The notes under the pieces: model-generated
What the model was told of the DNA's origin: nothing
Seen by the model: only the letters and a program-made list of their open reading frames with translations
The model's database searches: none
Made by a program: the position numbers and the translations under genes
Assembly (NCBI GenBank): GCA_051530055.1
Contig: JBMGUZ010000044.1
Span: 1 to 23,023 of the forward strand
Source of the DNA: Neoechinorhynchus agilis
Lineage: Eukaryota; Animalia; Acanthocephala
Reading direction: 5' to 3'
DNA: 23,023 bases
Part shown: positions 30 to 23,023 of the stretch, piece by piece
Layout: every line of letters begins with the position of its first letter
Numbering within the stretch: position 1 is the first letter of the stretch

Positions 30-930
30 TAAGAAACAAAGGATATACCCCTGCAGTCCTCCCCCTTTGTCGAGCAGCATTTCTTGGGATCATTGTTGAA
101 TGCGCCGTTTGCCAGATTTGAGGTGCTGAGCCACCATTCATTATGATTCACGTCCCGCACGCATCATTTTCGCCGCAGCGATCGCTTCCTTCACGGAAAT
201 CGGTCCAGTGAAGTATGCCTCAGTGCTTGGGACGATTGTGCCTTTTGGAAGCGCCTCATCATCCGACGAGGAGGTCGGTGAATATACGCCAAAAGCATAG
301 AGATTTCTCGACCGATGCTTTATGCTGACACGAAGGATTCGGTCAGTTATAATATTGCATAGTGCTGAGTGTCGGAGACGGGGTGATAAACAAACGCCTA
401 CACCTCCATTTCCTCGACTGTCCGCAGATAGGTAAGATAATGACCAGCCTCCTCCTGATTTACGTCTCTGTCTGATTGCCCTCTTATGCGCAATTCTTGT
501 AAAAACACAAGATCCATTCTGGCGTCCCTTGCCAATTTGGACAGGGTTCACCTACGCCATTGCGCTCGCAGACTCCTACTATTCAAGGATCTGATTCGTA
601 GTAATCTTCTGTTTGAAATAGCTGGGTCAAAGGGCTCACGGCTGTCAGCGCCACCTGAACAGTCCGTACCCACCACGGTGATGAGCTTCGACTGACGCTT
701 TCGTTGCCTCCAGCGACAGTTTCGCCCATTTCGACGCTCAAGTCGTCGGCGAGAGCTACGACGCCCTCGCTTTTTCCCGTTGCACTGGTGGATTTTGTTG
801 CTCCCGTTCGCTGTCGCATCACCAATGGAGCGGCACACCGACCCCCGCGTTGACAGGCTACTATCAGTAGCTGTCTGGCCGCCGGAGCTGCTTCTTTTAC
901 GTGACCGACAAGAATCAGTAACATCAAGTC
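30..930 (-). mobile_element. Degenerate RTE-like LINE fragment: APE endonuclease joined by internal deletion to RT N-terminal remnants
   Basis: Minus-strand translation across frames gives LRIRSLNSRSL, then DLVFLQELR (after the stop of the 548..838 ORF), then GNGGVGVCL...RILRVSIK...VYSPTSSSDDE (APE motifs). This runs straight into PISVKEAIAAAKMMRAGR (RT lead-in), and DCRGIS occurs at about 41-58. The extent beyond 620 (putative 5' region) is uncertain. Confidence 0.75.
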
Positions 931-1080
931 CGATTATCGTGAAAGAGGCTCGTAGAGTTCTCGGCGAACATCCTAAGCTTAAAAATGTCGATATGTGAGA
1001 TACCGGGGAATGTGATTAGCCGTCTATTACTAACAAACTGATGATGAACCCGACGAGCTTCGAAACGTCTTTAATAAATA
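930..1080 (+). mobile_element. 3' end of a Penelope-like element (GIY-YIG C-terminal tail plus 3' UTR)
   Basis: PIIVKEARRVLGEHPKLKNVD* (930-998) fits the PLE terminal pattern KEA..I....P.LN. It is followed by a CTGATGA...CGAAACGTC motif and AATAAA at 1073-1078. Confidence 0.6.
1035..1072 (+). ncRNA. Candidate minimal type I hammerhead ribozyme (PLE-associated), probably decayed
   Basis: CTGATGA (1038-1044), extra T, stem II GAACC/GCTTC with one C-C mismatch around loop CGACGA, GAAAC (1062-1066), GTC cleavage triplet (1067-1069). Stem I is only AAA/TTT. Confidence 0.5.
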
Positions 1081-1084
1081 CTCA

Positions 1085-1520
1085 TTTACCGGGTGTAGAC
1101 TCCTAACTATAGTTAGGCAAATTAATTGCTTCGATGAAACCCCGCGTGCTCTTTCCCTTTACGGGAGGAATTGAATTCTGGTCAGCATTACACTGGCCTT
1201 GTAGAGCTCGTTTCCAACTGAACAAGGATAAAGGTAGGATCAAATCACTCCTTCCATACTCTTCTCAATGGTATCGCGTTGTCTCCAAGAAAAAATTCGT
1301 ACCTTCGCAGCAAGCAGCTATATCGTGGATTAAAACCTCGGGCCTCAACAACGTGGTCAAAACTCTTTGTGACTTTCATTCTGAAGAATGCTTACCAGCA
1401 TTATAAACAGTTTCCTTGCCTGTCAAACCAAGACGCCATGATCTTTAAGCCTCTGATATTGTTCAATGGTGGAGATCAAGGGATAAGATTTTCGATAACG
1501 GCTCATCAATATGTTTGAAA
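1085..1520 (+). pseudogene. Highly degenerate non-LTR RT N-terminal region (possibly R2/NeSL-like)
   Basis: Scattered motifs across frames: LPGVD, WPCRARFQLNKDKG, ITPSILFSMVSRCLQEKI and LGPQQRG. These resemble RT domains 0-2, but there are many stops and frameshifts. Confidence 0.3.
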
Positions 1521-1579
1521 GCCACGAATGTACTCGACAAGGTCAACGTACCCGAGAAGACCAACGCTGCCGAGCTCAT

Positions 1580-2980
1580 ACGCGTCTCTATTGGTGTGTG
1601 CCCGGTTTGCGATAAGTCTTTAAATTAACATATTTTAGGGGTTTGTTTGCCCATGGTCCCCGGGATCTCCGCTGTGGCGGGTCTGGTTCTCCACCACAAT
1701 CCCTGGGACCTCTCAGATCACAACTGACTCTATTTAGATATCTGATATGGTGCGGGTTCATCTCAGGAACGTCCTGAAACGGATCTCAAACTGCGCACTA
1801 CATCAGGTCGCCATAACATTTACGGGATTCCTTAACAATTGCCTCCAAAATAGCTGTGCGCCATCATGGGCACGGCTCTTCGCATTCCCGCGCTCAGTTC
1901 TTTGAACCAGTTATGATTCTGAAGTGTCTTTGACTCCTTCGAAAAGATATTTATCAATGCGAGGTTCGTAAGGGACCCACGAAGAAAGGGCTTCGTAGCG
2001 GTTTTGAGGGATTTTCAGAACGCCTTTAACTCTATCAATAGAGAATGCATGTTCTGTACACTTTGGGACCACGTACCAGAAGCCATCCAGTATTTTCTCA
2101 ATGCTCACGGGACCGTGACTCCTTTGCATTTCGAAGACCACCTCATTTGGTCCGAAAGAGGAGAGCAGCATAAGGATCCTCTCGATCCAATCGCATTCTC
2201 CCCAACAGTAAATCCAATAGCGCACTCTCTCCATTCCAGCTTCAGCGCTTGGTATTTGGATGCGGCTACGCTCGGAGGTGATCCCTCCATTGTACTGTGC
2301 GATTTGGAGACGCTGATTAGGGAGACCTCGAGAATGGACATAGAGCTAAGACTCGAGAGCAACTCAGCCTCTTGGGTAGTTGCGTATTTGATTATGTCAA
2401 TCTAAAAATATCACCGAAGTCGGGCGCTAGTAGACCTTGCCTTGCCAGCCTTTCTTGGATCGTATGAGCGAAGTCAACCAATGGCGAAGAAAATTCTGAG
2501 GGAAAAGTTTTGTCTTGACCAAGAATTTGTGGTGGCAGTTGAGGAATGGTGCCAGCATTCAGGCGCTAACCATGTTCCCGTGAATGGCGTCAGACAGTTG
2601 ATCTGGGAAATACCTTTCGCCGCGATATCTCAAAGCTCACTACTTTCTGGTTTTCGCGATGGGGTCGTCCGAGCTCGATTGTCGGCAATTTCGACACGAA
2701 AATCGGGGCGTGGTTGGAGGCTGTTCCTCTGGCATCCTTGGGAACTCTTCTCACTGATGAGGTAACGAGGATCGCAGTTTCCTTAAGACTTGGTCTCCCG
2801 ATAAGCACGCACCATCGCTGTCGATGTGAGTCTTTGGTTGATGCTTTCGGGCGACACGGTTTCGTTTGCCAAAAGTCAGGATGAAGGTTCTCACGTCATT
2901 CTGAGATCAACAGCGTAATTTCTCCGGCGTCGAGAACGGCGAACTAACCCAACATCTTGGAACCCACCAATCTTTGTCGA
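1580..2980 (+). mobile_element. CRE-clade (RLE-type) non-LTR retrotransposon, family A, internally deleted and 3' truncated
   Basis: N-terminal zinc finger CPVC..(frameshift)..HGPRDLRCGGS at 1599-1680, then VLKRISN and WARLFAF. RT motifs DFQNAFNSI, GEQHKDPLDP and WYLDAATLGG in 2004..2405. C-terminal LPAFLGS, ARLSA..SGAWLEAVP..LRLG..HRCRC..HGFVC..RFSRHSEIN..LEPTNLCR, ending before the RLE catalytic motif. Confidence 0.9.
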
Positions 2981-3509
2981 CATCTCTTTCTAGATTTTCA
3001 TTTGCAAGACATTTGTAAAATTCTGCTTTTTAAAATTTACTAAAGTCATGTTGCCTTGCAATTCACTGATTATTGATAATCTCATACGAGAATTTGTTAA
3101 ATTGGAGGGTCTCTGTTTCTTTAGATGTGAAAAAGTGACCAAGTTATCATTGGTGGCCTTGGAGATAATATCATTTATTTCAGTTAATTTTATACAGATT
3201 AGATTTTATTTGATGGCTTGAAATTAATGATAGTCTTGTCATAGAAAACCACTTTAGTCTTTAGATCGAACTGTCCAAATTCAAATAAAATAAGATCGTG
3301 TCCCATGGTTTTCTGATCTAGAATTTTAGCCCTCACTCTCACTGTTGATCGACCAAGCGGGTTAATGCATCTTGAAGGTACTGAGCAGCGAAACCAACTG
3401 AAAAGGAAGTAGCATTCTTTAGGTAAAGCATTACGAAACTGTTCACAAATACGTCCATCTTCCCAAAGTAGACGACTCGAATCTGTTCTTGTGCGCACTG
3501 AACACATTT
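2981..3509 (-). mobile_element. Penelope-like element 3' fragment (GIY-YIG endonuclease and 3' UTR), copy 1
   Basis: TKCVQC...VVYFGKMD (YIG in copies 2 and 3), then after a frameshift VRVRAKILDQ...LILFE...IINFKPSNKI, fitting the PLE GIY-YIG layout. Near-identical to 9636-10165 and 15139-15670. Confidence 0.7.
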
Positions 3510-3513
3510 GGTC

Positions 3514-3879
3514 TCAGATAACACGATTGAAATCAGCGCATTAGATGTGCTTAAAATGTTTTTGTATTTCGTAACAACTTTCGAGCACCACAGATTTAAT
3601 TCATGTGTCTTTTATCAACTTCAATCCTTAAACTAAGTGTCAAAATTTAACAAGTAACATCAAACCGTAATTGCAGGTTAATTCAGCGTCAAAAGTAGAT
3701 CTAGAAAAGTTAATTTTATCTCAAATTTATTGACGTTTTAATATCAATAATCAAGGTAGTTCTTCTCAAAATGTAACAACAAATAACTTAAGAACCATGA
3801 TAGCTATCGCAAATCCGAAAACAGATTTGGAATCAGCGTGTTAAGATGTACTAAATGAGCTGATTCCGTTCACTACAGC
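3514..3879. repeat. 366-bp direct repeat, copy A (period 454 bp)
   Basis: Aligns by eye with 3968-4333 (about 90%). Contains the inverted pair GGAATCAGC (3829-3837) / GCTGATTCC (3859-3867). Confidence 0.95.
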
Positions 3880-3967
3880 TGTAATATTCGCATCGGAAAT
3901 CGCATTGTCATATTTTGTCAATATTCACAAGGGTGAAAGATCACTAAATTTGCAAGAATCATTAAAA

Positions 3968-4333
3968 TCAGATAACACCATTGAAATCAGCGCATTACAT
4001 ATGCTCAAAATGTTTTTGTATTTCGTAACAACTTTCGAGCACCACAGATTTAATTCAGGTGTCTTTTATCAACTTCAATCCTTAAACTAAGTGTCAAAAT
4101 TTAACAAGTAACATCAAACCGTAATTGTACGTGGATTCAGCGTCAAAAGTAGATCTAGAAAAGTTAATTTGATCTTAAATTGATTGATGTTTTAATATCA
4201 ATAATCAAGGTAGTTGGTCTCAAAATGTAACAACAAATAACTCAAGAACCATGACAGCTATCGCAAATCCGAATACAGATTTGGAATCAGCGCGTTAAGA
4301 TGTACTAAGTTAGCTGATTCCGTACACTACAGC
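3968..4333. repeat. 366-bp direct repeat, copy B
   Basis: Starts TCAGATAAC and ends CACTACAGC, exactly 454 bp downstream of copy A; 88-bp unique spacer between the copies. Confidence 0.95.
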
Positions 4334-4339
4334 AACGAC

Positions 4340-5210
4340 TGAACGTTGGTATACATTTATATTGACAATCAGTTAAAAACTCGCGTTAACTATGCTGTCC
4401 AGCTTTATTTATTGATCTGGATAACTCGCGCATTTGTTGAACTCCTTAGCCCATGAATCAATACGATTCAAAAGTTGTATTTTGATTTAAGGAATGCATC
4501 GACACAGAACAACTCATAATTTTGGATAGATTTTACTTGAAACATAAACTTAAAGAAGAATTGCTGGCACTGATTCCAACACAAAATTTAACAAACGGCA
4601 ACGATATACATAAAAGACACTGAAGGAATTTTTATTAAGCAATGATAACTTCATGAGAAAGTTCTTATCGGTCAATAATGGTTGGACGGAGAAAAGGCCA
4701 GATTGTGTTCCTGGTAGCCGATAACGATTTTCCGAGCTTATCAATGTATTATTCACCAGCAAACTTTGTGTTAAAAACTTAAAGACGATAAGCTGCAAAA
4801 TGTTATGTCTATTGTTGTTAAAATTTTAAACTTATTCATGCAAATCTTTTAAATCACAAACAGTTTTAAGACATTGCTACAAGAATACGATAGCAATTAT
4901 AGTGATTTTGTTCTGCGTGCCAAAGTTCACAAGCTGAGGAAAGAGAAAGTACTGACAAAACTATTGGATCTAATTGAAGAACTCAAAATATTTCTTAACG
5001 TGAAATCCAAGGAGCTGTTGAAATATCTTTAAGCGCCAAAGTTTATTCTTTTGGTGGAGTTTTGAAACCATTAGAAAAGTTTAAATTGGATTTTTCCACA
5101 AATATCAAAATGCTATAAAAAGATATTGACAATGTTCGGAAGCAGCTACGATTTTTAAACTGGATTTTTTTTAGAAAATGACTAACATCAAGTTGAAAAA
5201 GCGAATGTTT
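4340..5210 (+). mobile_element. Degenerate hAT transposase fragment (Buster/SPIN, GTF2IRD2/FAM200-like)
   Basis: Across frameshifts: IDNQLK, SLAHES, DTEQLII..RF, EELLALIP..TNGNDI, YQCIIHQQTLC, NVMSIVVKILN, LNHKQF, YSDFVLRAKV...KVLTKLLDLIEELKIFL. This is the canonical motif order of this hAT subfamily. No TIRs were seen. Confidence 0.85.
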
Positions 5211-5289
5211 TTGACTGACGAACTGATCTTAGTTGTTTCTATACGATTGTGCGCTGAACCGTCACACGGCACATTAACTAGTTTATTTT

Positions 5290-5500
5290 TATCCCCGCCT
5301 TAACACGCCTTTTCTGGAGTTTTGGACGCCCGATTCGGTGCCACAAGTGCTCACCTCCGCCTTTGTGGCGAATTGCATTGTGCATCGTAATCCGTTGATC
5401 CTCACTTCAATTTCCATTTTCTTCTTCTTTGATCGATTTGGTTGATTCACCTTTTCCATGTCGAACATATCGCCCTCGCTTTCTTCTCCTTTCCCCTCCT
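5290..5500 (-). mobile_element. Ty3/Gypsy aspartic protease relic
   Basis: MEIEVRINGLRCTMQFATKAEVS (degenerate DTGA motif) then frameshifted LWHRIGRPKL, paralleling INGIQITMEYDTGASVS..YWRRIGQPTL at 18263..18838. Confidence 0.6.
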
Positions 5501-5967
5501 CGAGGATATGTAAAAGTGGGCTCTGCTGTTTTTACAGATAAATAATCCGATAATACTTACTATTGATCAGTGATGAAGCGGGCATATCGACTATCAGAAG
5601 CGAGAAGTTGAGAAGTCTCGCGCTTGATTCTTAGCCTTATTGCACTGGATCCCTCTTAAAATATTTCTAAAGACAGCAGAGAAACACTGAGAGATTTGAT
5701 ATTAATCCAACATTTAGTCTTGCTCTTCTGCCTTGATCAACGCTTACGGAAATTCTTATAAAATGTATCAGAAAAAGGACGATGTGTGTGTTAATTTTGT
5801 TGTAATGTATGTATGAGGCTTGTTTAAAGTAAAATTAAAAAGCAATAAAATTTTTAAAATGCGCAAATCGTAACAAAAGCGACTTAGAAATGTTGTTTGC
5901 TGATGTCGTTCAAGACATAAGAAACACTCACACAAAAAGACCATCGAGTTATCTTAAAAGATTTTAG

Positions 5968-6668
5968 CTACATTTCTCCTCGAGAAGGATCCTTCGATCG
6001 CTTCGTCTGGTGAATCAGTACCTGGAATGGAATCGCGAATTAAAGTAGGATTTTCGCTAGGAACCGAAGCAATCGAGATGAGAAGCTCAACTGGCGATTC
6101 TAAATCTTTGGCAAAAAACTAGAGTTCGGCGTCTCCAAGTGCAGCATTGATAAATTCTCCGTCGTACGATTTCGGCCCAAATCCATGCGGAAATAACTGG
6201 TGCAATCAAAATTATCAATCAAGGTGGAATAAAAGTTACAAGGGATATGAAGCACAAACATTGCCATCTCAGGCGAGCAAAGCAGAGGTACCGTCTCAGA
6301 AAAACACAAAGAATATAGTCAAAGGCGTGAGCATTACGGGGATTCCTGCTCAGCCGAAGACTGAAGGAATAGAGCATAAATCGATACTCAAAGGCGCCGA
6401 TGTGAAACCAAAGGTTATATTTGACGACCACCGAACGACGAATTCAAGTTTGGATATCGAGTCAATTAAAACGACCTCGCTAGAGCTTACAGAAATAACA
6501 ACTGCCGAATCTTTAAGAACGACCGATGTACCAATCGAGAAAATGGAAATTACGACTGAAGCTTCTAAGACGCCAATAGCCTTGGAACCTTGCCTTGTTG
6601 CTCAAAATGGTTCAGCATCGCGGAACTGGCATTGGTGCCTCTCCTTAGAGCTTATTTGCGTTCTTTAG
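5968..6668 (+). CDS. Putative terminal exon of a Ser/Thr-rich, possibly GPI-anchored or membrane protein; contains one in-frame TAG (6120-6122), possible pseudogene
   Basis: TTTTAG acceptor ends at 5967. The frame is open 5968-6668 apart from the single TAG. Encodes a Thr/Glu-rich stalk and the C-terminus NGSASRNWHWCLSLELICVL. Confidence 0.4.
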
Positions 6669-7394
6669 TTCTTCTTTCAAATTTGTTTGGTTGGCAAACA
6701 TTCGTGAGGGTAATTCTGTTAGCTTTCATATTCATCTCGTTTCTTCACCATGGAGCTTAATGATTCAGCTTTCGTCGTGTAGATACAAAAATCTAGGCCT
6801 TTGAACGGAGCTCCTTTTATGGGATTTAATAAAACTCCTTCACAATTTCCACCATAAACAAACATAACGATAAAAAAACCGGAAGCAATAAATTATTTGT
6901 CTGGTTCAAAAGATTTCACCATTAATTTTGGATCGTTAAACGGACGAAGAATATTGCACTGTTGTTCTATTTTATTTGCTGGTGTAAATGGGAAGAAAAA
7001 GTCCATAAAACCCGAAACGTCGAATTTGGCATAGCGGTCCGTATTTACCCTTTAAACTTATTCGGCATTCAAAGAATAAAACATCGATTATCGCTTTGAA
7101 ATTAGCCAAAAGCAATGCGCCTGAATGTTACGTAAAGAACATAATTATTTTAAGGTTTGAACTGACAAAAAAATTAAAAACCAAAACGTAAACGCTTATT
7201 TCTTGGTTATTAGAATCTAAAAACGATTCCGAAGTTCTTCAAAAGCGCATACGACGACTAACAATAGGTTTTTAAAAAATAAAAAATGGATAATGCGTCC
7301 AAAATTCATATTTTTGAGAATAAAGCAAGCGCTGAAAGTTTGAAAAGTTCACTAACAGTTAGTTTTCGGCAACGATGTAAAGTCCGACAACGAC

Positions 7395-8520
7395 AAACGT
7401 AGCAGCAATAGTTCTGGACGATTTTAAAATACTCGTAGAAAAAACCAAAGAACTGGGGTTGCAACTCAATTTCGCAAAGTGCCAAATTCTGCTGCTAAAC
7501 ATGAAGGGAAAAAACGAGCCAATTATATTGGATGAGTTTTCATCGGTTGCACTAGGAATAGAAACCATTAATCTTAGTAAGCTTCGTCTATTGGGATCTT
7601 GCGTGATGAAGGAGAATCTTCCAAAGGATATTGAAATGACCGCTTCAGAGCTAAAGCTGATATGCAAGAGAACATCGGATTTGAAGAGCCATGAAGCAAT
7701 CTTTTTGGTAAAGAACTGCCTCTTCGTGCCTAAGCTCCTGCACAAACTAAGGACTGTTCCTGCCTTCGACAACACGGACGACCTCGATAAATTGGACTGC
7801 CTATTGCGCGGTGAGCTGGAGAAAACGCTTAACATCGCCTCTGACGATACATCATGGAGACAAGCTACATTACGACATTAAGTGGGGGTTCCGGACTACG
7901 ACAGGCTAAAGATGTCACTTTACCGGCTTTCCTTGCCTCCATTTGTGCTAGTCTTAAGTACTCAACTATTATTTTTCCTGAGGTCAACGCGGAGCATTTC
8001 GATCGAGCCTTTGTGAAATTGGACAACATTAAGCTGGCAAACACAGATACCTCGAGAAAGCAACAAACAGCAAGCGTTGGATTCTCCACTCGTTCATCGG
8101 GTTCAATCTCAATTACAAGACCAGGTGGATGAAGTGGCTAGGATCCCTCTCGCTGCTTGTTCGACCAAAGAATCTGGAGCCTGGCTTGATGCTCTACCAT
8201 CCTCAAATTTGGGCACTTTGCTGGATGATGAGACCTTCCGTATTGCTTACTGTCTCAGATTCGGAATGGACATTTGCGTCGCTCATAAATGTCGATGTGG
8301 TGTCACAGTGGACAGCAACGGACTCCCATGTAAACTGTCCCCAGGACGTTTTCCCCGCCATGCTGAAATCAATGCTATCATAAGTCGAGCGCTGAGATCG
8401 ATTCATGTGCCCTGCATCCTGGAGCCAAAAAATCTCTGCCGCCCAGACGGGAAACGCGGATTAATTCTCACTCGTAGCTGGTCTAGAATCGTAAGCGGCG
8501 CGAAGTCGCAAAATAAGGTT
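7395..8520 (+). mobile_element. CRE-clade non-LTR retrotransposon, family B, 5' truncated and frameshifted
   Basis: LGLQLNFAKCQI, PKLLHKLRT, WRQATL, SGLRQAKDVTLPAFLAS, SGAWLDALPSSNLG, HKCRCG, GRFPRHAEIN, LEPKNLCRPDGKR-GL. The sequence is clearly diverged from family A. Confidence 0.9.
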
Positions 8521-8523
8521 ACT

Positions 8524-8850
8524 GGCTTTTGCCGTGAAATATATTGGCAGCGAAGTAAATATGGCAAATTCCTCCGAACCCGAAATAACTGCTCATATAC
8601 AAAGAGGGTGGCTCAATTGGAGGAAGATGTCTAGTGTACTATGCAACAAAAAGATCTCACCAAAACTGAAAGGGCGGGTGTTCGAGACCGTGGTGCGGCC
8701 AGCCATGTTATATAGCGCAGAAACTTGGACGACCAAGCAAAACGACCTCAGAAGATTAGAAACGCACGAGACGAGGATGGTGAGATGGGCAGCAGGGTGC
8801 ACTCTCAAGGATAAGCAAAGAAATGTGGACATCAGGGAGCTGTTCGGCAC
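8524..8850 (+). mobile_element. RTE-clade LINE fragment (post-RT region)
   Basis: KYIGS..EITAHIQRGWLNWRKMSSVLCNKKISPKLKGRVFETVVRPAMLYSAETW..RLETHETRMVRW..RNVDIR is the typical RTE C-terminal domain. Confidence 0.9.
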
Positions 8851-8899: not shown

Positions 8900-9204
8900 C
8901 TCGACCACGAATGCCACGGTTTTTACCCCATAAATTTGTTCAGACGGTTTTGTCTGAAATTATCACTAATTTTAATTCGAATCAGAAGTCAATGAAGATT
9001 TTAATTTCCTTCGATATCTCTAAGGCTTTTGATAACATTGATATCGCTTTTATAATAAAGATCCTTCGTTGTTTTCACTTCGCTTATAACCTAGTTGCAC
9101 GAGTGAACAGCACTATGAAGTCTAAGCAATTTTTTATCAAGATAACACATCTGACAAGATTTATCATCAAACTGAAGGAGTTCCACAAGGGTCCCCGCTC
9201 TCGC
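8900..9204 (+). mobile_element. APE-type LINE RT core fragment from a third family
   Basis: SFDISKAFDNID, followed after a frameshift by GVPQGSPLS (about 9175-9203); breaks directly into CRE family A sequence. Confidence 0.8.
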
Positions 9205-9635
9205 TGCCAGCATGGAGGCGCTAACTATGTTCCCGGGAATGGCGTCAGACAGTTGATCTGGGAAAGACCTCTCGCCGCGAGATCTCACAGCTCACTACTT
9301 TCTGGTTTTCGCGATGGGGTCGTCCGAGCTCGATTGTCGGCAATTTCGACACGAAAATCGGGGCGTGGTTGGAGGCTGTTCCTCTGGCATCCTTGGGAAC
9401 TCTTCTCACTGATGAGGTAACGAGGATCGCAGTTTCCTTAAGACTTGGTCTCCCGATGAGCACGCACCATCGCTGTCGATGTGAGTCTTTGGTTGATGAT
9501 TTTGGGCGACACGGTTTCGTTTGCCAAAAGTCAGGAGGAATGTTCTCACGCCATTCTGAGATCAATAGCGTAATTTCTCCGGCGTCGAGAACGGCGAACT
9601 AACCCAACATCTTGGAACCCACCAATCTTTGTCGA
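9205..9635 (+). mobile_element. CRE family A 3' fragment, copy 2
   Basis: Near-identical to 2550-2980 and ends at the same CTTTGTCGA|CATCTC junction. Confidence 0.9.
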
Positions 9636-10447
9636 CATCTCTTTCTAGATTTTCATTTGCAAGATATTTGTAAAATTCTGCTTTTTAAAATTTACTTAAG
9701 GTCATGTTTCCTTGCAATTCACTGATTATTGATAACCTCATACGAAAATTTGTTAATTTGGAGGGTCTCTGTTTCCTTAGACATGAAAAGGTGACCAAGT
9801 TATCATTGGCTTCCTTCGAGATAATATTATTCATTTGAGTTAATTTTATACAGATTAGATTTTATTTGATGGTTTGAAATTAATGATAGTCTTGTCATAG
9901 AAAACCACTTTAGTCTTTAGATCGAACTGTCCAAATTCAAATAAAATAAGATCGTGTCCCATGGATTTCTGATCTAGAATTTGAGCCCTCACTCTCACTG
10001 TCGATCGACCAAGCGGGTTAATGCATCTTGAAGGTACTGAGCAGCGAAACCAACTGAAAAGGAAGTGACATTCTTTAGGTAAAGCATTACGAAACTGTTC
10101 ACAAATACGTCCATCTTCCCAATGTAGACGACTCGAATCTGTTCTTGTGCGCACTGAACACATTTAGTCTAATAGTTGGCATTACTCCTCGTGCAAAGTT
10201 GCATTTTTGGCGTCAATCGTCCTTGGACATTGCTTGCCGGATGCTTTTTCGGAGGGCTCCTGTGAACTGATCGAATTTATAGACCTGTCTCTTTTTGAGC
10301 CTTCTGATGTCGCTCTTGGGTTTTTTCTCTAACGAATGGGATCCTGAGGACTGCTAAGGCATCACTATTCATTTCCCTCTTTCTCGAACTTCCACCAGCT
10401 GATTCTGTTGGTCGTTGAAACTTCTCGATTTCCCGATCCTCATAACC
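9636..10447 (-). mobile_element. Penelope-like element 3' fragment, copy 2
   Basis: GY..REIEKF..LRIPFVREK (linker), CTRSNANY*TKCVQC..VVYIG (GIY-YIG), ILDQ..FKPSNKI. Carries a 38-bp deletion relative to copy 3. Confidence 0.75.
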
Positions 10448-10701
10448 ATCGATACCATGCAAATAAATGCAAAGATTATTAAGAACTGTAATATTTCTCA
10501 ATACCAAATCGATCAAGGAATGTCATTATTTCTGTGCGTGAACAATATTTATAACGTGCTTTTTAGTATTGCGGAAGGAAAAATGTTGTCATTAAGACAT
10601 GTCAATTGCTGTTTTTTTATCAAGAGATAGAATCTACAACCTATTGATTTTTATTGATACTTTTATTAATTGGAAGGGAAACTTTCTTTTTGATAGTTAC
10701 T

Positions 10702-11013
10702 TTACTCTTGAATTTGACATTCATCTTTTGGCAATTTAATCTCAATAAGCTTATCCATTTCCTCCTTAGATGTTGATTTGTTCATAGGTGTAATTATATT
10801 TCGATACTTCATTTCTACCCTGAGCTTGGGAGAATCTACACGGATATCGTCTTTTGGATTCATACTATGACGTTCACAAGATAGCTTTTCATTTAATATT
10901 TTATAGCAATTCTCTCGATTGCTTTTGTATCTCCCATTAAGATGCAGTGGTCCGAAATGCACACTCAGAGTATTAATACTATTAATTTTTTGGCACAATA
11001 AACATTTTAGCAT
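10702..11013 (-). CDS. 103-aa ORF with a single C2H2-like zinc finger (C-x2-C-x11-H-x4-H); probably a terminal exon or short gene
   Basis: CLLC..HFGPLH near the N-terminus. Two minus-strand AATAAA (10662-10667, 10650-10655) lie 35-50 nt after the stop. The upstream frame is open for about 50 more codons apart from one TGA. Confidence 0.4.
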   Translation of the reverse strand: MLKCLLCQKINSINTLSVHFGPLHLNGRYKSNRENCYKILNEKLSCERHSMNPKDDIRVDSPKLRVEMKYRNIITPMNKSTSKEEMDKLIEIKLPKDECQIQE

Positions 11014-11165
11014 ATTGGTGAAACTATCATCGTCGTCTTTAGCGCTTCTTTTCTTACTATTTCATTCATTATTTAAGTTGGAATTATAAGATTGAGGCCT
11101 TTGGGCTTGTTGGAATTGTTTTCGATTCCGCAAGTTTAAAATTAGCGTCCATATTTGCATTTCAG

Positions 11166-11349
11166 CTGCGGGGGGGGGCTGAATTCAAATCTTTTTCTTC
11201 GTTCAATAACGACAAAACGGTTTCAATAAAATTAAATTCTTCAAAAGAGAAGAGATATTTGATAACGGTTTCGAGACAATTTTCGTCCTCGTTGCATCCT
11301 TTCAAAAATCTAATGAAATCCTAGCAAGAAATTTTTCTATTAAATCGAG
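11166..11349 (+). other. Exon-like segment bounded by TTTCAG and GTAAGA, with a G10 run and one in-frame TAG
   Basis: Strong splice-site look-alikes at both ends; the best frame reads AEFKSFSSF..KRYLITVSRQF..KS*QEIF. No recognisable domain. Confidence 0.2.
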
Positions 11350-12063
11350 GTAAGAAATTTCGGACAAATTTACATCATGAGATCTCAAATTGAATCCGTA
11401 TTTTTGGAAGTAAAATTTGATGAAATGGGTTAATCGATCAATAGATAGCGAGGTATTAGCACAAACGTTTTTCCCTCCACATATTTCGGAACATCACGTG
11501 TATGGTCTCCTGAATGAAAAGTAGCCAATCAGCATGCTCTAATTACCTGTCTTTGTAAAAAAACATCGAATTTTAATGCTAAAGTAGCTGTAAGGTATTA
11601 ACAACAACTAAGTCGCTTGTTCCGAAACGAATTTTCACGCCTCATTAGTTGTGTGTCATCAATTTTACGGTTCAATTGACAGATAAAAATCGACTTCTTT
11701 AACACGTATCGGTGTTTCAACCGTAGACTATCAATACGTTAGTGATATCCGTTGTTCTGTCTTGATAAGTGTCGAAAGCGATACAGTAAAGAATTTTCGA
11801 ATCAGAATGTTGCAATTCAGTGGGGTTTTAGCGATGTGAAATGTCATAAAATTTGCAGAAATTGCATTAGTTTTAATTTGGAATGATTTGAAAATCACCT
11901 GCCATTCGAAGCGCTGCGTCAGGTTTATAGAAACATTTTGCTGTTAAGTAACTGAACTTTTTGGTAGATCATTAGAAAACCTGATAAAGATTGTAAAGCC
12001 TCCAAAATCTCGACTAACCGTAGTTTCCTAATTTTAGACAGTTCAGAGCTACAGATTTGAAGT

Positions 12064-12909
12064 ATGACGACAAGACAACCATTCGGGATAAGGGCACCAC
12101 CAATCGAGGAAAGCGCACAATTCCTGCGGAACCACATCTCTGGTCAGCCCAATAGTTTCAGTCATCCAGATCCACCAACGTTCAACATTATTCACCAAGG
12201 TCACCAAATATATAATCCCTTCGATGATGATATTTACCTCGATCGAGAAGTCGAAAAATTTTTGGAAAACGCAGATAATACTATAAATAATTGTGCACCT
12301 CCGCCCGGCTTTGATGATTTCACTTTTATTTTCAATGAGTCACCACCAAGCATAGATGACTTCAGTAATAATCATTCATCGATTGGAAATGAAGAATATT
12401 GCTTACCTCCACCAGGTTTTGAAAATTGCTCATTTTCTTATTACGATTACGAGCCCGAAAACGAAGGATACTTCTCAACTCCACCAGGTTTCGAGAACGT
12501 GACTTTTGATTATTACGATTCACGATCAGGAATGGACGAATATTGCTCACCTCTTCTCTATTTTGAGAATCCGGCCTTTAATCACGGGTGGAATGGAAAC
12601 GAAGATTACTACGAATCGTTTCTCGATTTTCAGGAATCAACCGTTATATTTAATGAGTCGTCGTTGGAATTCGAAAAATACAGCGAGTTTTTTACTTTAT
12701 TTAGTGAAGTAGAGCCAAAAGAACCTCAAGGTCGTTATGTAAGCCCAGCGACGTGCAAGATAATAGATTTGCAAGACAGTAGCACGCAAACGGAGCCGAA
12801 TATCGTATCGAAACCTTGGAATGGATTGACAACAATAAAGAATATTATTGATGCCGTCTACCAAGTGGCCGTTGCGGCATTCAACTACTTCAGAAGGATA
12901 TTTTTCTGA
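12064..12909 (+). CDS. Intact single-exon 281-aa acidic, low-complexity orphan protein with PPGF repeats, NPF and TQT motifs
   Basis: ATG-to-TGA ORF of 846 nt in AT-rich flanks, with internal peptide repeats and AATAAA 27 nt after the stop. No TE motifs were recognised. Confidence 0.75.
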   Translation: MTTRQPFGIRAPPIEESAQFLRNHISGQPNSFSHPDPPTFNIIHQGHQIYNPFDDDIYLDREVEKFLENADNTINNCAPPPGFDDFTFIFNESPPSIDDFSNNHSSIGNEEYCLPPPGFENCSFSYYDYEPENEGYFSTPPGFENVTFDYYDSRSGMDEYCSPLLYFENPAFNHGWNGNEDYYESFLDFQESTVIFNESSLEFEKYSEFFTLFSEVEPKEPQGRYVSPATCKIIDLQDSSTQTEPNIVSKPWNGLTTIKNIIDAVYQVAVAAFNYFRRIFF

Positions 12910-13234: not shown

Positions 13235-13496
13235 GATCATTAAATCACTTTAAGTATTGCCATTAAATTCGGATACGAAGATGCTCGAAGCCTCCATTCA
13301 ACACTTTAGGGCATCGAATTCGAATTTTGATGGTAGCAATAATATTTTCCTGAGCTTTTTATTGCTTATCCAACCTTTCATTCTTCGAACAAGAAGTCTC
13401 CATCGTTTTTTAATAAAATGCTGTCCAAAGATCGTAGAAACAGATTTTCAAGCTTTCGTGTTTTGCTGTGAAATATTCTAATATGTCTAAAAAAGC
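13235..13496. repeat. About 260-bp dispersed direct repeat, copy 1
   Basis: Aligns with 16862-17120 (roughly 85-90% by eye). Confidence 0.9.
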
Positions 13497-14782: not shown

Positions 14783-15138
14783 ATATCTCACAGCTCTCTA
14801 CTTTCAGGTTTTCGCGATGGGGTCGTCCAAGCTCGATTGTCGGCAATTTCGACACGAAAATCGGGGCGTGGTTGGAGGCTGTTCCTCTGGCATCCTTGGG
14901 AACTCTTCTCGCTGATGAGGTAACGAGGATCGCAGTTTCCTTAAGACTTGGTCTCCCGGTAAGCACGCACCATCGCTGTCGATGTGGGTCTTTGGTTGAT
15001 GCTTTCGGGCGACACGGTTTCGTTTGCCAAAAGTCAGGAGGAAGGTTCTCACGCCATTCTGAGATCAATAGCGTAATTTCTTGGGCGTTGAGAACGGCGA
15101 ACTTCCCCAACATCTTGGAACCCACCCATCTTTGTCGA
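14783..15138 (+). mobile_element. CRE family A 3' fragment, copy 3
   Basis: Near-identical to 2625-2980 with the same junction. It retains ancestral-looking codons (GGA and TTC where copy 1 has TGA and TAA). Confidence 0.9.
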
Positions 15139-16030
15139 CATCTCTTTCTAGGTTTTCATTTGCAAGACATTTGTAAAATTCTGCTTTTTAAAATTTACTT
15201 AAGGTCATGATGCCTTGCGATTCACTGATTATTGATAATCTCATAAGAGAATTTGTTAATATGGAGGGTCTCTGTGTCCTTAGATGTGAAAAGGTGACCA
15301 AGTTATCATTGGCGGCCTTGGAGATAATATTATTCATTTCAGTTAATTTTATACAGATTAGATTTTATTTGATTGTTTGAAATAAATGATAGTCTTGTCA
15401 TAGAAAACCACTTTAGTCCTTAGATCGAACTGTCCAAATTCAAATAAAATAAGATCGTGTCCCATGGATTTCTGATCTAGAATTTGAGCCCCTCACTCTC
15501 ACTGTTCATCGACCAAGCGGGTTAATGCATCTTGAAGGTACTGAGCAGCGAAACCAACTGAAAAGGAAGTGGCATTCTTTAGGTAAAGCATTACGAAACT
15601 GTTCACAAATACGTCCATCTTCCCAATGTAGACGACTCGAATCTGTTCTTGTGCGCACTGAACACATTTAGTCTAATAGTTGGCATTACTCCTCGTGCAA
15701 AGTGGCATTTTTGGCGTCAATCGTCCTTGGACATTGCTTGCCGGATGCTTTTTGAGTTGTCCGTATTCCTTGTTAGAATACGGAGTAATACCGGAGGGCT
15801 CCTGTGAGCTGATCGAATCTCAAAACCTGTCTCTTTTTGAGCCTCCTGATGCCACTCTTGGATTTTGCTCTAACGAACGGGATCCTGAGGACCGTTAAGG
15901 CATCACTATTCATTTCCCTCTTTCTCGAACTTCCACCAGCTGATTCTGTTGGTCGTTGAAACTTCTCAATTTCCCGATACCCATAACCGTTTTGAGCGAT
16001 CAGTCGGTTTATTCCCTGAGCAAAGATGCA
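15139..16030 (-). mobile_element. Penelope-like element 3' fragment, copy 3 (longest)
   Basis: RLIAQNGYGYREIEKF..VLRIPFV..GFEIRSAHRSPPVLLRILT..CTRSNANY*TKCVQC..YIG. Shares sequence with copy 2 up to 15988; the 5' limit is uncertain. Confidence 0.75.
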
Positions 16031-16861: not shown

Positions 16862-17120
16862 GATCATTAAATCACTTAAAGTATTGCCAATAAATTCGGA
16901 TACGACGATGCTCGAAACCTCCATTCAACACTTTAGGGCATCGAATTCGAATTTTGATGGTAGCAATAATATTTTCCTGAGCTTTCTATTGCTCATCCAT
17001 CATTTCATTCTTCGAATAAGAAGTCTTTATCGTTTTTAATAAAATGCTGTCCAACGATCGTAGAAACAGCCTTTCAAGCTTTGGTGTTCCGTTGTGAAAT
17101 ATTCTAATATGTCTAAAAGC
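16862..17120. repeat. About 260-bp dispersed direct repeat, copy 2; abuts and truncates the Gypsy integrase
   Basis: Aligns with 13235-13496. The stop codon of the 17113..17730 ORF lies inside this repeat. Confidence 0.9.
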
Positions 17121-17830
17121 TTATAGTCGATCGTAAATTCGGACGTATACGATCAAATACGGTCTTCAACCGCCGTCCAAGTAATGTCTCAGCTGGTGCT
17201 TTTTGGCTAGTTTTGTGTGGTGTATTCCGGTAAGTTAAAAGAAATTGGTGAATTGAGAGCATATTTTTGTACCAGTCGTTTTTGATGTGTACTCGTCTCT
17301 TGAAGGTTCTGATGAATCTCTCTACCAAACCGTTGGTTTGAGGATGGTAGGGAGATGAACGGATATGCCTTATCCGATTTGTTGAACAAAGCTGTTTAAA
17401 TTGCGCGGACTGAAAGGGTGGGCCATTGTCAGATATGATTTCGGCTGGGACACCGAATCGTGCAAAAACGGATCTTAATTTGTCGATGGTTTCAAATGCA
17501 GATGTTGAGTGTATTGGAAAAATCTCCGGCCAGTGGCTATACGTGTCTATAAGCACTAGAAACGATTGTCCATTGATTGATCCCGCAAAATCCAAATGGA
17601 TTTGGGTCCACGGTTCCTCTGGCACATCCCATTGGTACATCGGAGTTTCTGCTGCATCTGCTCTCCTGCTCTGCCAGTTCACGCACGCAACTTGTGCTCG
17701 ATGTCCTCTCGTATGGATGGCCACCAACAATAATACCTTTCTAGGTCTTTCATTGTTGTTATCCCGGGGTGTCCAGTATGTAAGACATCAAGTGCTTTAT
17801 TCCTCAATGCCTGGGCGATTATAAGGCGTT
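17121..17830 (-). pseudogene. pol: Gypsy integrase (H2C2 zinc finger and DDE core)
   Basis: LHTGHPGITTMK..WWPSI, PWTQIHLDFAG..LVLIDTYSHWPE, ISDNGPPF, PYHPQTNGLVERFIRTFK, YRNTPH..PAETLLGRRL. Confidence 0.95.
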
Positions 17831-17921
17831 GCAACCATAGGATGACTCCGTCCTCTACTGAAAGCTCTTGTCTGCGAGACGAATATTTATGTAGTTCCGG
17901 AGGGGCCAACCACTCACTAAG

Positions 17922-18838
17922 TTGAAAAACTGCCGGAGCTGAGCTGATTCCAAATGGCAGTCGTTTGTATCGGAAAAATCCTCGATGGGTCGAGATTGTC
18001 AAGTATTTCCTAGAGTCCGCGTTGGCAGGTAGTTGTAGATAAGCATCTTTCAAATCGAGCCTTGAATACTACTCACCTCCCGCTATTTGGTTGACGATCT
18101 CTTCCCATGTAGGAATGGCGTAGTTATCGATTGTTAGATGTGGATTAATTGTTACTCTAAAGTCTCCGCATATCCTGATATCACCACTGGTTTCCTTGCA
18201 ATCACAATCGGCGCAGCCCAATCGATAGAGTCTTTACGTAGATCCACTTTCTCCAGCACATCTCATTCTAACTGCCTTATCAACTCGTTTTCTACTTTGT
18301 TCTTCAATGTCAGTGGAATTCTTCGACTTGCACATCTTCTCGGTGTGGCATTGGGTTCTATTGCTAGTGATATTTCGGTATTATTGACAGGAGTATTCGA
18401 TTCATCGAAAATCGACTTATTCTTCAATAGTAGCTGATCGATTGAGGTAACGACCGAATCGATATCTGATTCTGTTTGCTGGCTATCAAGCCTGTGGCAT
18501 ACGACATCAGGCCAAGGAACTTCGAAAACGTCTATCCAAGGACGCCCAAATAGACTATACTTCCCGTTTCGTACCACCATGACTTCTAACTGCTTTTGTC
18601 TTTCTCCCAAACTCGCATTGATATTGCATTTTCCCAGGGTTACTAACCGTTTGCCACCATACGCCTTGAGGGGTTTGGCAGCATTCAAAGTTGGCTGGCC
18701 TATTCTACGCCAATATGTCATAGTCAACACCGATACACTGGCACCAGTATCATACTCCATCGTTATTTGTATCCCATTTATTTGGACATCTATTCTTGGA
18801 ATCTGATTCTCCACTATCGTTGTGTGGTTTGCATCCAT
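17922..18838 (-). pseudogene. pol: Gypsy protease and N-terminal RT
   Basis: MEYDTGASVS, LFGRPW, WAAPIV, KDAYLQL..STHRGFFRYKRLPFGISSAPAVFQ. No YxDD follows because of the deletion junction at about 17921. Confidence 0.95.
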
Positions 18839-18859
18839 TATCTTATTTAGTTCTTCAAT

Positions 18860-19930
18860 TTGATCTACTGGGTACCTTGATCGGCAACACGATCTGAAAT
18901 GACCCGTCCTTTAGCGTTTGAAACAACTCTTGTTCTTTGCTGGACACTGATATTTCGTGCTCTATTCCACATCTTTTACAGCGTTGTTTAGGTCTTTTCT
19001 CCCTCTGATCACGTGTATTATGCCGTTTTCGAATCATGTCAATTTCAAAAAACTTTCCGTCTTGCATATATTTTGCTGTGTACGAATCATTCGGAAGTTC
19101 TTGACCTACATACTGCTTCCTCCACGACGTATTCTTTATCATTTCAAACGTTTCACAAATCTTCATCACGCCGCTCAAAGAAGGTGCTGCCATTTGCAAA
19201 ATTTTGTTCCTCACCTCATCGTGTGGCGTTCCAATCGCTATCTGGTCTCTGATCTGGTCTTCGATCGCATCTTTTTCCGAATTGATGGATTTATTGAAAA
19301 ATTGACACAATCCAGCTTCTTCTCGTAGGTCTACAATCCATGATGCATAAGATTGACCATTTTTCATTTCGTATTGACTAAATGCGAAACGCGCAGCGAC
19401 GATATGGATTGGGCGTGAGTGATGGGTATCCAGCAATTCTATTAATTCATGGTAATCATAATGGTTGACATCTTTTCCCGTATTTAGACTTGACAGTAGT
19501 TGGTATGCCGAGGGCCCAATCCATGATAGGAACATGTTTCTCATCATTAGTCGATCGGTGACATTTTGAGCAGCAAAGTGGAACCCGATTTGTTGTTTGT
19601 AGCTTCGCCGACTTTCTTTTTCCTCAAGAAAGCGCCGGAATCCCGTTGCTCGCACATTATCCTTCCTGGCAGTCGTGTTCGAATTGGCTAGAGACTCATT
19701 TATTTCACCATATTTTACAATATTCAGTTCTATTCACTTACATGATATAAATTACATTATCATTAAGTAGAGTGGACAAGTTGCTTAAATTGGTTAGGAT
19801 ACTGCTTACTTTAGATTGACTATATTCTTACAGCGTATACTCAAGCTTAAGGCGTAGCTCAAACTTGCTTACGTCCGGAAGCAACTGTTCTAATAATTGT
19901 TGCTGTTATTGGAGAATTGTTCTTAATAAA
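18860..19930 (-). pseudogene. gag: Gypsy gag with two zinc knuckles, interrupted near its N-terminus
   Basis: ILQ*QQQLLEQLL just after the PBS; HIVAARFAF..W..DLREEA..C.F..IRDQI. CKRCGIEH, then frameshifted CPAKNKSCFKR..GHFRSCC. Confidence 0.85.
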
Positions 19931-19947: not shown

Positions 19948-20030
19948 TGTGGTAGCCATACAACAACAACTTGTTTATTATTCGAAGTCCGTCTTCCAAC
20001 TAGCACACGCTATCTATATGTGTGTGGTCC
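19948..20030 (-). repeat. 3' part (R/U5) of the Gypsy 5' LTR; outer limit unresolved
   Basis: Ends in CCACA next to the PBS and contains minus-strand AATAAA. There is no second LTR in the window to align against. Confidence 0.55.
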
Positions 20031-21458
20031 GAATCGATATTCAAAGAGTATAAAGGGCAAAATATTTAATTGGCTGGAAACTGTATTCATCGGAAATGAT
20101 AGTAAAATCCTCATCGGTAAGCTCCGGCGCAACCTGTGTTCGTTATTCAGATCGGCCACAGCCGCTGATCTACAGAACATATTGGCTTGCTTTGACGCAA
20201 ACTTCCTTGGTATAAAAGATTTTGTGATGAGATGACTAGAAGAGGCGTCAATTAATATTTTATTGAAAACTTCTCAGGAGACCTTCGAAGATGATGACCG
20301 AGTTTTTGATATGAGATAGATGAAGAGATTAATATATGTTCCGTTTAAATTGATTTTATCCTTGATCTTTATACCATTATATGAGAAACAGATCATGGGT
20401 AAAACTTTCTTTAGGAAAAATCCGTCTAAATAGTAAGTATAATTATGAAAGGATGGGAATTTTGGTAGGTGTAGTAAATGGTTGTTAAAAAGTCCCAAGA
20501 TATTTGCTATTAAAGTCTGCAATAATTATATCCGTGTCCCAAAAAGGGGGTTTTCATCTGGGTTTTAATAAAAAAGAGACCTTGCGTGGGTTAATGTAAG
20601 CGAATAGGAGAAGTTGGCAAAGTTTGGAGTTTTTGTTTGAAAGAGTAATTTAGCCTCACGATTTTTGCTTAGAACGGATTGTAACCCTCTTGAGAAATCC
20701 AAGCGGTTTCCATTGGGTGATGAACTAAAATTTAAGAGCAAGGAATCATATTTACTGTTATTGACTAGTAAACATGACCCAGTCTCTTGAAAAAATAAAT
20801 GATCAGGATTTGAGAATGCGAAAAAGGGCAAAAGGAGTCTGGGGAGCGATTGGGACGAAATGCATTGTAAGTGACAAATGAAAAATCTAGATTACTATTG
20901 GTTGGGAAATTATTCATTTTTATGAAGGTTTGCCCTTTTTTTATCAAAAGAGGAGTGTGGGGAGAGATGCCATTTTGACGAGGCTGGATCAGAGCCTTCT
21001 TGAGTGGTTACGCTAAGAATATCAATTGCATCTTTTGGGACTATGCTTTCGTTAAAAGGGAGTCCACATTTTTATGCGGCAGAGAGCTTAGTGAGTTGTT
21101 ATTTACAATGTCAAGTGCTGCCTTATCCCAGGCTATATTCGGGGGAATGAATGTTGCTTTAATCATAGGAGATGAAGGGATGTTTGAGACTTCCTTACTT
21201 GTAGAGAAGGAATCCTTTATTATTCGAAAGTTAGAAAGTGAATTTACAAATAGATTGTGGTTGTTTGGAAGGACATATTCGAACGTAAGCGGGTGATTAG
21301 GAGTAATTACAGAAGCACGGACGAGAAGGGCGGTGAACAGCCTGTTATTCCCGGTGGTACTCCCGGAATTATGAAAGGATCGATATTGCTTACCTGCTCA
21401 ATAACCGGAAGTTTAACACACTCACGCTCACGAGATTGAGCTTCATCATAATGACGAT
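20030..21458 (-). mobile_element. Degenerate APE-type LINE, 5' part of the ORF
   Basis: FSFVTYN, PDHLFFQET, DIIIADFNS and FPSF...YLDGFF are APE motifs in order across frameshifts. Long, mostly open frames lie upstream (20950-21450) and downstream. Confidence 0.6.
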
Positions 21459-23023
21459 CCCCCGGTATGGACCAGTCACCAGCGAAGTAAGTGGTGATAT
21501 TCAATGGTCAGTTGAGCAAGAGGAAAATGGTCGCATCTCTTTCATGGATCGGGCAAAAAGAGGCACATTCGAAAGGTTGATGTACCATAAACCTAACTTA
21601 CATTGGAGACCCCCAGTATGGACCAGTCATCAGCGAAGTAGTGATATTCAATGGTCAGTTGAGCAAGAGGAAAATGGTCACATCTCTTTCATGGATCGGG
21701 CAAAAAGAGGCACATTCGAAACGTTGATGTACCATAAACCTAACTTACCTTGGAGACCCCCAGTATGGACCAGTCATTAGCGAAGTAGTGATATTCAATG
21801 GTCAGTTGAGCAAGAGGAAAATGGTCGCATCTCTTTCATGGATCGGGCAAAAAGAGGCACATTCGAAACGTTGATGTACCATAAACCTAACTTACATTGG
21901 AGACCCCCGGTATGGACCAGTCACCAGCGAAGTAAGTGGTGATATTCAATGGTCAGTTGAGCAAGAGGAAAATGGTCACATCTCTTTCATGGATCGGGCA
22001 AAAAGAGGCACATTCGAAAGGTTGATGTACCATAAACCTAACTCACCTTGGAGACCCCCAGTATAGACCAGTCATTAGCGAAGTAGTGATATTCAATGGT
22101 CAGTTGAGCAAGAGGAAAATGGTCACATCTCTTTCATGGATCGGGCAAAAAGAGGCACATTCGAAAGGTTGATGTACCATAAACCTAACTCACCTTGAAG
22201 ACCCCTGGTATGGACCAATCACCAGCGAAGTAAGTGGTGATATTCAATGGTCAGTTGAGCAAGAGGAAAATGGTCGCATCTCTTTCATGGATCGGGCAAA
22301 AAGAGGCACATTCGAAACGTTGATGTACCATAAACCTAACTTACATTGGAGACCCCTGGTATGGACCAATCACCAGCGAAGTAAGTGGTGATATTCAATG
22401 GTCAGTTGAGCAAGAGGAAAATGGTCGCATCTCTTTCATGGATCGGGCAAAAAGAGGCACATTCGAAACGTTGATGTACCATAAACCTAACTTACATTGG
22501 AGACCCCCGGTATGGACCAGTCACCAGCGAAGTAAGTGGTGATATTCAATGGTCAGTTGAGCAAGAGGAAAATGGTCACATCTCTTTCATGGATCGGGCA
22601 AAAAGAGGCACATTCGAAAGGTTGATGTACCATAAACCTAACTTACATTGGAGACCCCAGTATGGACCAGTCATCAGCGAAGTAGTGATATTCAATGGTC
22701 AGTTGAGCAAGAGGAAAATGGTCACATCTCTTTCATGGATCGGGCAAAAAGAGGCACATTCGAAACGTTGATGTACCATAAACCTAACTTACCTTGGAGA
22801 CCCCCAGTATGGACCAGTCATTAGCGAAGTAGTGATATTCAATGGTCAGTTGAGCAAGAGGAAAATGGTCGCATCTCTTTCATGGATCGGGCAAAAAGAG
22901 GAACATTCGAAACGTTGATGTACCATAAACCTAACTTACATTGGAGACCCCCGGTATGGACCAGTCACCAGCGAAGTAAGTGGTGATATTCAATGGTCAG
23001 TTGAGCAAGAGGAAAATGGTCAC
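21459..23023. repeat. Satellite array, 147/151-bp monomers, at least 10.5 copies, runs off the window end
   Basis: The GTATGGACCA anchor (GTATAG variant at 22061) occurs at 21465, 21616, 21763, 21910, 22061, 22208, 22359, 22510, 22660, 22807 and 22954. Unit lengths are 151,147,147,151,147,151,151,150,147,147. Confidence 0.99.

Follow-up and report, generated by a model that had tools for sequence, protein, structure and literature searches.

The window analysed here is the complete contig JBMGUZ010000044.1, an unplaced contig of 23,023 bp from the Neoechinorhynchus agilis assembly GCA_051530055.1. Tandem Repeats Finder (TRF) revealed a single strong array in it, located at positions 21459-23023, with a period of 151, 10.5 copies and 94% matches. 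A sequence-only reading of this DNA had described tandem monomers with a characteristic translation at this position, and both TRF and the splitting of the array into monomers confirmed them. Considering these two results and the profile match obtained for each monomer, the feature is described here as a tandem array of 10.5 monomers derived from the reverse transcriptase (RT) of a Penelope-like element (PLE), with the ancestral RT sense strand on the + strand. The array runs off the contig end, that is, into an assembly break, and the 10.5 copies are its visible part. On the other side, a sensitive monomer profile (nhmmer) pushed the left edge to about 21447, with 21447-21489 aligning with monomer positions 104-144. 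The left junction and the first partial monomer thus occupy 21447-21495 (+ strand), which corresponds to roughly the final 37-49 bp of a unit of the 151-bp type.

Monomers were delimited by cutting at the conserved word GATATTCAATGG. The ten complete monomers are arranged head-to-tail and measure, in order, 147, 147, 151, 147, 151, 151, 151, 146, 147 and 151 bp, followed by a 39-bp stub that ends at the last base of the window. Their translation is DIQWSVEQEENG[R/H]ISFMDRAKRGTFE[T/R]LMYHKPN[L/S][H/P]WRPPVWTSHQ. The A type is exemplified by the 147-bp monomer at 21496-21642 (+ strand), the only copy of this length without an in-frame stop (DIQWSVEQEENGRISFMDRAKRGTFERLMYHKPNLHWRPPVWTSHQRSS), and the B type by the 151-bp monomer at 21790-21940 (+ strand), which carries four extra bases at the seam (GAAGTAAGTGGT versus GAAGTAGT) that shift the ancestral frame. 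The proposal of a unit of exactly 49 codons and of nucleosome length fits a minority of the copies and is numerology, since a length of 147 bp is found in only four of the ten complete monomers, three of these four contain in-frame stops, most copies measure 151 or 146 bp, and the frame is not conserved.

Concerning the organization above the monomer level, the window array presents a higher-order repeat of seven monomers (1045 bp). Its first copy spans 21496-22540 (+ strand; 147, 147, 151, 147, 151, 151 and 151 bp), and its second copy, at 22541-23023 (+ strand), is partial (146, 147 and 151 bp plus the 39-bp stub) and is cut by the contig end. Monomers located seven positions apart are 98.6-100% identical, versus a mean of 94-95% at other shifts, and 22541-23023 shares 99.4% identity with 21496-21979. 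TRF also proposed a 298-bp dimer register, which was rejected because it does not improve on the monomer period (94% in both cases); the real register is that of seven monomers. A higher-order pattern of this kind is the usual signature of unequal exchange.

The relationship of the monomer to PLEs was analyzed with a profile HMM. A consensus PLE probe retrieved 921 matches, most of which are RT fragments from animals with Pfam RVT_1 and/or PF26215, and the profile was made from 119 of these 921 proteins, which are real PLE-type RT fragments. The PLE architecture was verified for the source loci of two of the 119. At locus L003, from the starfish Asterias, an ORF in which Pfam recognises GIY-YIG (25.9 bits, above the cutoff) comes after the matching RT ORF, and the other locus (L004) showed the same order more weakly. 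The presence of GIY-YIG beside the RT at both loci indicates that the profile represents PLEs and not another RT class.

In six-frame translations, every monomer of the window was matched by this profile at profile positions 81-119, with one match reaching position 135, while the only other match in the 46 kb of six-frame translation of the window, outside the array, scored -2.5 bits. The window consensus monomer alone scored 18.6 bits (P about 6e-8, profile positions 82-119), and 9.4 bits was the highest score among 20,000 residue shuffles. Compared with individual PLE fragments, the monomer shows 40-43% identity over 37-47 aa. The matched RT segment lies downstream of YVDD and has the pattern ..I.FT.E.E..G.LPFLD....G....VYRKP........SH. 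Hence, a significant similarity between the monomer and PLEs exists, and the earlier suggestion that the monomer comes from the PLE RT coding region just downstream of YVDD is supported, both by the profile matches of each monomer and by the continuity observed at a second locus of the same genome.

Searches that start from single sequences gave a different kind of result. Pfam returned only chance-level matches for the monomer and its dimer, in a model set that did not contain PF26215, the model listed for PLE fragments. A word-index search of 5.8 billion proteins with the monomer dimer retrieved no PLE, and the same kind of search with the RT remnant described below, stitched together, retrieved no close PLE protein and at most one protein of the same genome (P0121). 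When one monomer was compared exhaustively with 1.84 billion representative proteins by phmmer, no PLE was matched either. The only genuine match in this comparison was P0121, annotated as a 'hypothetical protein' of N. agilis, and this match pointed to the second array. Three further phmmer matches were discarded: P0122 and P0124 are unrelated repetitive proteins, and P0123, encoded on another contig (L006), is spurious, as it has no PLE-profile or nucleotide similarity. This contig (ENA assembly ERZ25072730) consists, at 36-7716, almost entirely of one 174-bp satellite in 44 copies, whose ORFs weakly matched the monomer in phmmer. A metagenome scan with a conserved 21-mer gave a single match (L005), which is a chance match in an AT-rich ORF; by eye, this ORF resembles a bacterial aminoacyl-tRNA synthetase gene.

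The second array is located on chromosome CM121341.1 of the same assembly, at about 2.45 Mb of 19.4 Mb. In the locus extracted around it (L002), it occupies positions 9184-12022 (2.8 kb) and is composed of 19.5 copies of 146 bp, 17 of the 19 full copies being identical. Its consensus shares 92.5% identity with that of the window array. The L002 monomer scores 21.5 bits against the PLE profile, versus 18.6 bits for the window monomer, and is somewhat nearer to the PLE consensus, with FLD and ETS where the window version has FMD and ETL. This fits its place beside an RT remnant. Directly upstream of the first L002 monomer, the sequence reads ...SFEFNHK*YDQCDGVATGSPLAPVLADLYMRKWEDKF...RRRYVDHAFIITNQNIDHNRLKEDLNEV, interrupted by stops and frameshifts, and the flank at 8978-9150 encodes ...YDQCDGVATGSPLAPVLADLYM...RRRYVDHAFII.... 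This flank therefore carries the PLE-type RT motifs B (GSPLAP) and C (RYVD) in the right order and spacing before the array. Against the PLE profile, this flank on its own reaches 32.5 bits, and together with the first monomer it forms one uninterrupted, colinear domain covering profile positions 10-119, with 60 bits and an E value of 1e-20. Pfam RVT_1 also matches the flank (E 0.004).

The L002 flank is the parental PLE in decayed form. The sequence-only reading had proposed to look for a parental PLE in the genome; a decayed remnant lies beside the L002 array, and no intact or close copy was recovered by the two word-index searches and the exhaustive phmmer search. The catalytic-core flank with motifs B and C is present at L002 only and absent from the window. 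In the six-frame translations of L002, the PLE profile found no match outside the RT remnant and the array, and the right flank of the L002 array contains no PLE, GIY-YIG or hammerhead sequence. The remnant is truncated, and tblastn with two GIY-YIG ORFs found no such domain at either the window or L002; the 3' rest of the RT ORF is missing at L002, and likewise the C-terminal endonuclease domain, if the parent had one. The sequence upstream of the left junction of the window array is unrelated to PLEs and also to the flank of the L002 array, as a blastn comparison of the flanks at both loci showed no similarity. As PLE sequence is missing both to the right of the L002 array and to the left of the window array, we infer, rather than read directly, that the repeat was born at this locus.

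The duplication seam was mapped by comparing the parental flank at the second locus with the internal junctions of the array. It had been placed between WTSHQ and DIQW, which is close, but the actual seam lies just 5' of GAAGTAG, 9 nt upstream of GATATT. The seam ...CAGC|GAAGTAGTGATATTC is common to both arrays, which indicates their descent from one duplication event and argues for a single origin. The copied unit begins a few codons beyond the 'LN' located after RYVDD and ends two codons beyond the 'SH' located after VYRKP. By its position, this unit would correspond to RT motifs 6/7 and the start of the thumb.

Regarding these data, the interpretation that we consider best supported, with a probability of roughly 88%, is that the array is non-coding tandem-repeat DNA whose unit is a fossil of a PLE RT ORF segment. 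Several other explanations have to be weighed against it. The resemblance to PLE RT could be coincidental and the repeat of unrelated origin, as the missing Pfam match for the monomer and the failure of single-sequence searches of billions of proteins to find a PLE might suggest. Nevertheless, the score statistics of the profile and the shuffle control speak against chance, and the colinear RT motifs that adjoin the array at L002 rule out a coincidental resemblance, so this explanation is effectively refuted and retains a very small probability; the homology of the monomers to PLE-type RT is shown. It is even less probable that the array codes for a genuine protein made of 49-residue repeats. 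In the window array, the longest open frame, at 21436-21780 (+ strand), has a TTG start and encodes 114 aa, and a 141-aa 'hypothetical protein', KAL7674202.1 (ACOME3_000481), is annotated on the L002 array (10001-10496). However, in-frame stops occur in five of the ten window monomers, and the 146-bp and 151-bp units break the reading frame, so that most monomers have either stops or frame-breaking lengths. In L002, the consensus monomer contains an in-frame TAA and the 146-bp period rotates the frame in each unit. Substitutions between the two array consensuses are 0 synonymous and 10 non-synonymous, where about 19% synonymous would be expected by chance, and the 12 distinct variants within the window array comprise 3 synonymous and 9 non-synonymous changes, with three nonsense. 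The stops, the frame-breaking lengths and the non-synonymous excess imply that there is no protein-coding constraint on the repeat. The 114-aa frame is a relic and not a gene, and the gene look-up for its product gave no record. KAL7674202.1 is the PLE-derived repeat translated in rotating frames, in a model that stays open only by means of a predicted intron and two deletion-bearing monomers, and it is almost certainly not a real gene.

Two further explanations accept the PLE origin and concern mobility. The repeat could be an internal tandem block of a non-autonomous PLE derivative that is moved as a unit, in trans, by a PLE RT, in which case the arrays would be separate insertions. This agrees with the PLE RT sequence attached to the left of the L002 array, with the short and dispersed character of the known arrays (2.8 kb, and 1.6 kb or more), and with the 5' truncation and the complex tandem structures typical of PLE insertions, some families having internal tandem repeats (PMC8557442). 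Against it, no PLE sequence lies to the left of the window array, which also begins at another phase of the monomer, the right flank of L002 lacks PLE, GIY-YIG and hammerhead sequences, and the two loci share no flanks; mobility as a unit is therefore considered unlikely. The array could also be a non-LTR retrozyme, that is, hammerhead-bearing tandem repeats that come from PLE pseudo-LTRs (pLTRs) and spread via circular RNA, given that retrozymes are tandem and PLE-related (bioRxiv 10.64898/2026.07.22.740005; PMC4209133) and that CUGAUGA is found on the minus strand of some monomers. The box is, however, missing from the 151-bp variants, and no hammerhead family was detected in Rfam scans of the window array (E up to 10) or of the L002 array and its flanks (E up to 1), while the scan of the window at the Rfam gathering threshold was empty. 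On both strands, the folding of the monomer RNA is no better than that of shuffled sequences (z 0.1-0.6), so that neither the Rfam scans nor the folding gave an RNA structure signal or a hammerhead ribozyme in the repeat, and the homology is to the RT ORF and not to the pLTR. A retrozyme is accordingly among the least probable explanations, with a chance similar to that of a real protein.

Returning to the fossil of a PLE RT segment, the following history could account for the observations. A segment of a dead PLE insertion would have been duplicated once, by slippage or illegitimate recombination. Unequal exchange would then have enlarged the array, probably at the chromosomal site where the RT remnant persists or close to it. 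DNA of the array may later have been seeded at one or more further sites, the window contig included. There, the array would have reached its 7.5% divergence from the L002 array, gained the 151-bp variant and been homogenised in blocks of 1045 bp. A more speculative possibility for the first duplication is that the PLE RT, which is related to telomerase, could have repeatedly copied a short stretch of its own mRNA during integration.

As for the function of the repeat, most likely there is none, and it behaves like a repeat that evolves neutrally and is maintained by recombination-driven turnover. It could be thought that it is a major satellite of N. agilis, perhaps marking pericentromeric or heterochromatic domains or feeding small-RNA silencing of a still-active parent PLE, and this would explain the assembly break at the end of the window contig. 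This option is regarded as improbable. Two array loci were found in N. agilis, the window array of 1.6 kb or more and the 2.8-kb array of L002. The latter is flanked by the fibrillarin and Rad1 genes, with a 5S rDNA cluster 5 kb away, and this location does not look centromeric.

Satellites derived from transposable elements come mostly from LTRs, TIRs and UTRs (PMC9659126), and the sequence-only reading had considered an origin from an internal RT segment unusual. This was overstated, since both ORF-derived satellites (PMC9659126) and Penelope-related satellites (PMC11955569, PMC11846391) have already been reported. Among the former are chicken HinfI, from CR1 ORF2, Phodopus PROsat and seal Pvc20, from LINE-1 ORF2, rye E3900, from gag, and Chenopodium CficCl-61-40, from a CACTA transposase (PMC9659126). 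As in the N. agilis repeat, the tandem unit of these satellites is recognisably a piece of transposon coding sequence without coding constraint. The N. agilis repeat differs from them in its PLE donor, in its short 147-bp unit that lies wholly inside the RT domain, and in having a locus that keeps a remnant of the parental ORF beside the first monomer; the table of ORF-derived satellites in that work has no PLE entry (PMC9659126). The Penelope-related satellites are HviSat02-2707 of the catfish Harttia (PMC11955569) and the superfamily SF1 of the flea beetle Omophoita octoguttata (PMC11846391). Compared by description, they are also tandem families similar to PLEs. However, these reports rest on repeat-library similarity, with monomers that are long (2.7 kb) or partly matching, and the matching part of the PLE is not given in their main text, whereas in N. 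agilis the exact RT segment and the duplication seam were mapped.

Non-LTR retrozymes and the hammerhead-bearing PLE pseudo-LTR repeats (PMC4209133; bioRxiv 10.64898/2026.07.22.740005) are tandem, PLE-derived and non-coding, like the N. agilis repeat, but they come from the pLTR, contain hammerhead ribozymes and spread as RNA, whereas the source of the N. agilis repeat is the RT ORF, and neither a ribozyme nor a signal of RNA structure is present in it. The same pathway as the one proposed here, with a short tandem duplication inside a transposon copy followed by independent arrays elsewhere, has been described for satellites that come from tandem repeats of LTR retrotransposons, such as PisTR-A, from the 3'UTR of Ogre elements, and the Lathyrus satellites (PMC7004042). 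Those satellites arose from hypervariable non-coding regions of active elements, in contrast to a coding segment of a catalytic domain in an element that is dead at the locus seen here.

The N. agilis repeat is therefore a clear example, though one with precedents, of a repeat that arose from the coding sequence of a transposon. One genome shows the start of a repeat family, with the donor segment, the exact seam, a locus that retains the ORF remnant, and a secondary array, that of the window, which already has length variants and a higher-order repeat. It places PLEs, at the resolution of a mapped segment, among the few transposons with coding regions that have given rise to tandem repeats, and it does so in Acanthocephala, a phylum with barely described repeats. 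In Pomphorhynchus laevis, the only surveyed acanthocephalan, PLEs make up 8.9% of the genome (PMC8557442), and the N. agilis genome paper makes no mention of satellites or Penelope. The understanding of how satellites originate is not changed by this repeat. On the practical side, the analysis flags at least one annotated 'hypothetical protein' (KAL7674202.1) as a translation artefact.

Other features were observed around the second array. At 193-3812 of L002 (about 2.451-2.455 Mb of the chromosome), just upstream of the fibrillarin gene, there is a 5S rRNA cluster of 14 copies, 12 of them in an array with a 266-bp period, and a 151-aa 'gene' called across this cluster looks like an annotation artefact. 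A 375-bp tandem repeat in 3 copies is located at 5097-6199, between the fibrillarin gene and the PLE remnant, and a (TAT)n run of about 95 units is found at 20053-20335, near the end of the locus.

Concerning the rest of the window, the claim that other fragments of the PLE family occur in it four times could not be sustained. None was detected outside the array with the PLE profile or with tblastn using two PLEs, including their GIY-YIG parts, and motif regexes and Pfam on the RT-like ORFs and on the left flank gave the same result. The window does contain RT-like ORFs at 1930-2405, 7359-7881 and 8077-8634, as well as a dispersed repeat of 1.1-1.3 kb present in three direct copies that are 92-98% identical (2627-3813, 9282-10450 and 14785-15990). 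The ORF of this repeat ends with a CCHC-like motif followed by RH...N...EP. From the pattern CCHC...RH...EP...RPD, the dispersed repeat and the RT-like ORFs resemble a LINE carrying a restriction-like endonuclease and not a PLE, a motif-based reading that neither Pfam nor PDB sequences confirmed.

A decayed LTR-retrotransposon interior occupies 17113-19655 on the minus strand. Its order is a gag-like ORF, an aspartyl protease, a short RT fragment fused to an integrase zinc-binding domain, and the rve integrase core, and most of its RT appears to have been deleted. At 12064-12909 there is a 281-aa ORF, which is a gene in the public annotation and presents repeated PPPGF(D/E)N/D..F motifs, with no Pfam match. 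The stretch at 20000-21500, just to the left of the array, has a strong positive GC skew (+0.25) and no recognisable coding or repeat content. Finally, two pairs of direct repeats were identified: a 300-bp pair at 3514-3813 and 3968-4267, with a spacing of 454 bp and 94% identity, and a pair of roughly 260 bp at 13235-13492 and 16862-17118, with a spacing of 3.6 kb and 92% identity, whose right copy lies directly against the integrase end of the decayed LTR element.
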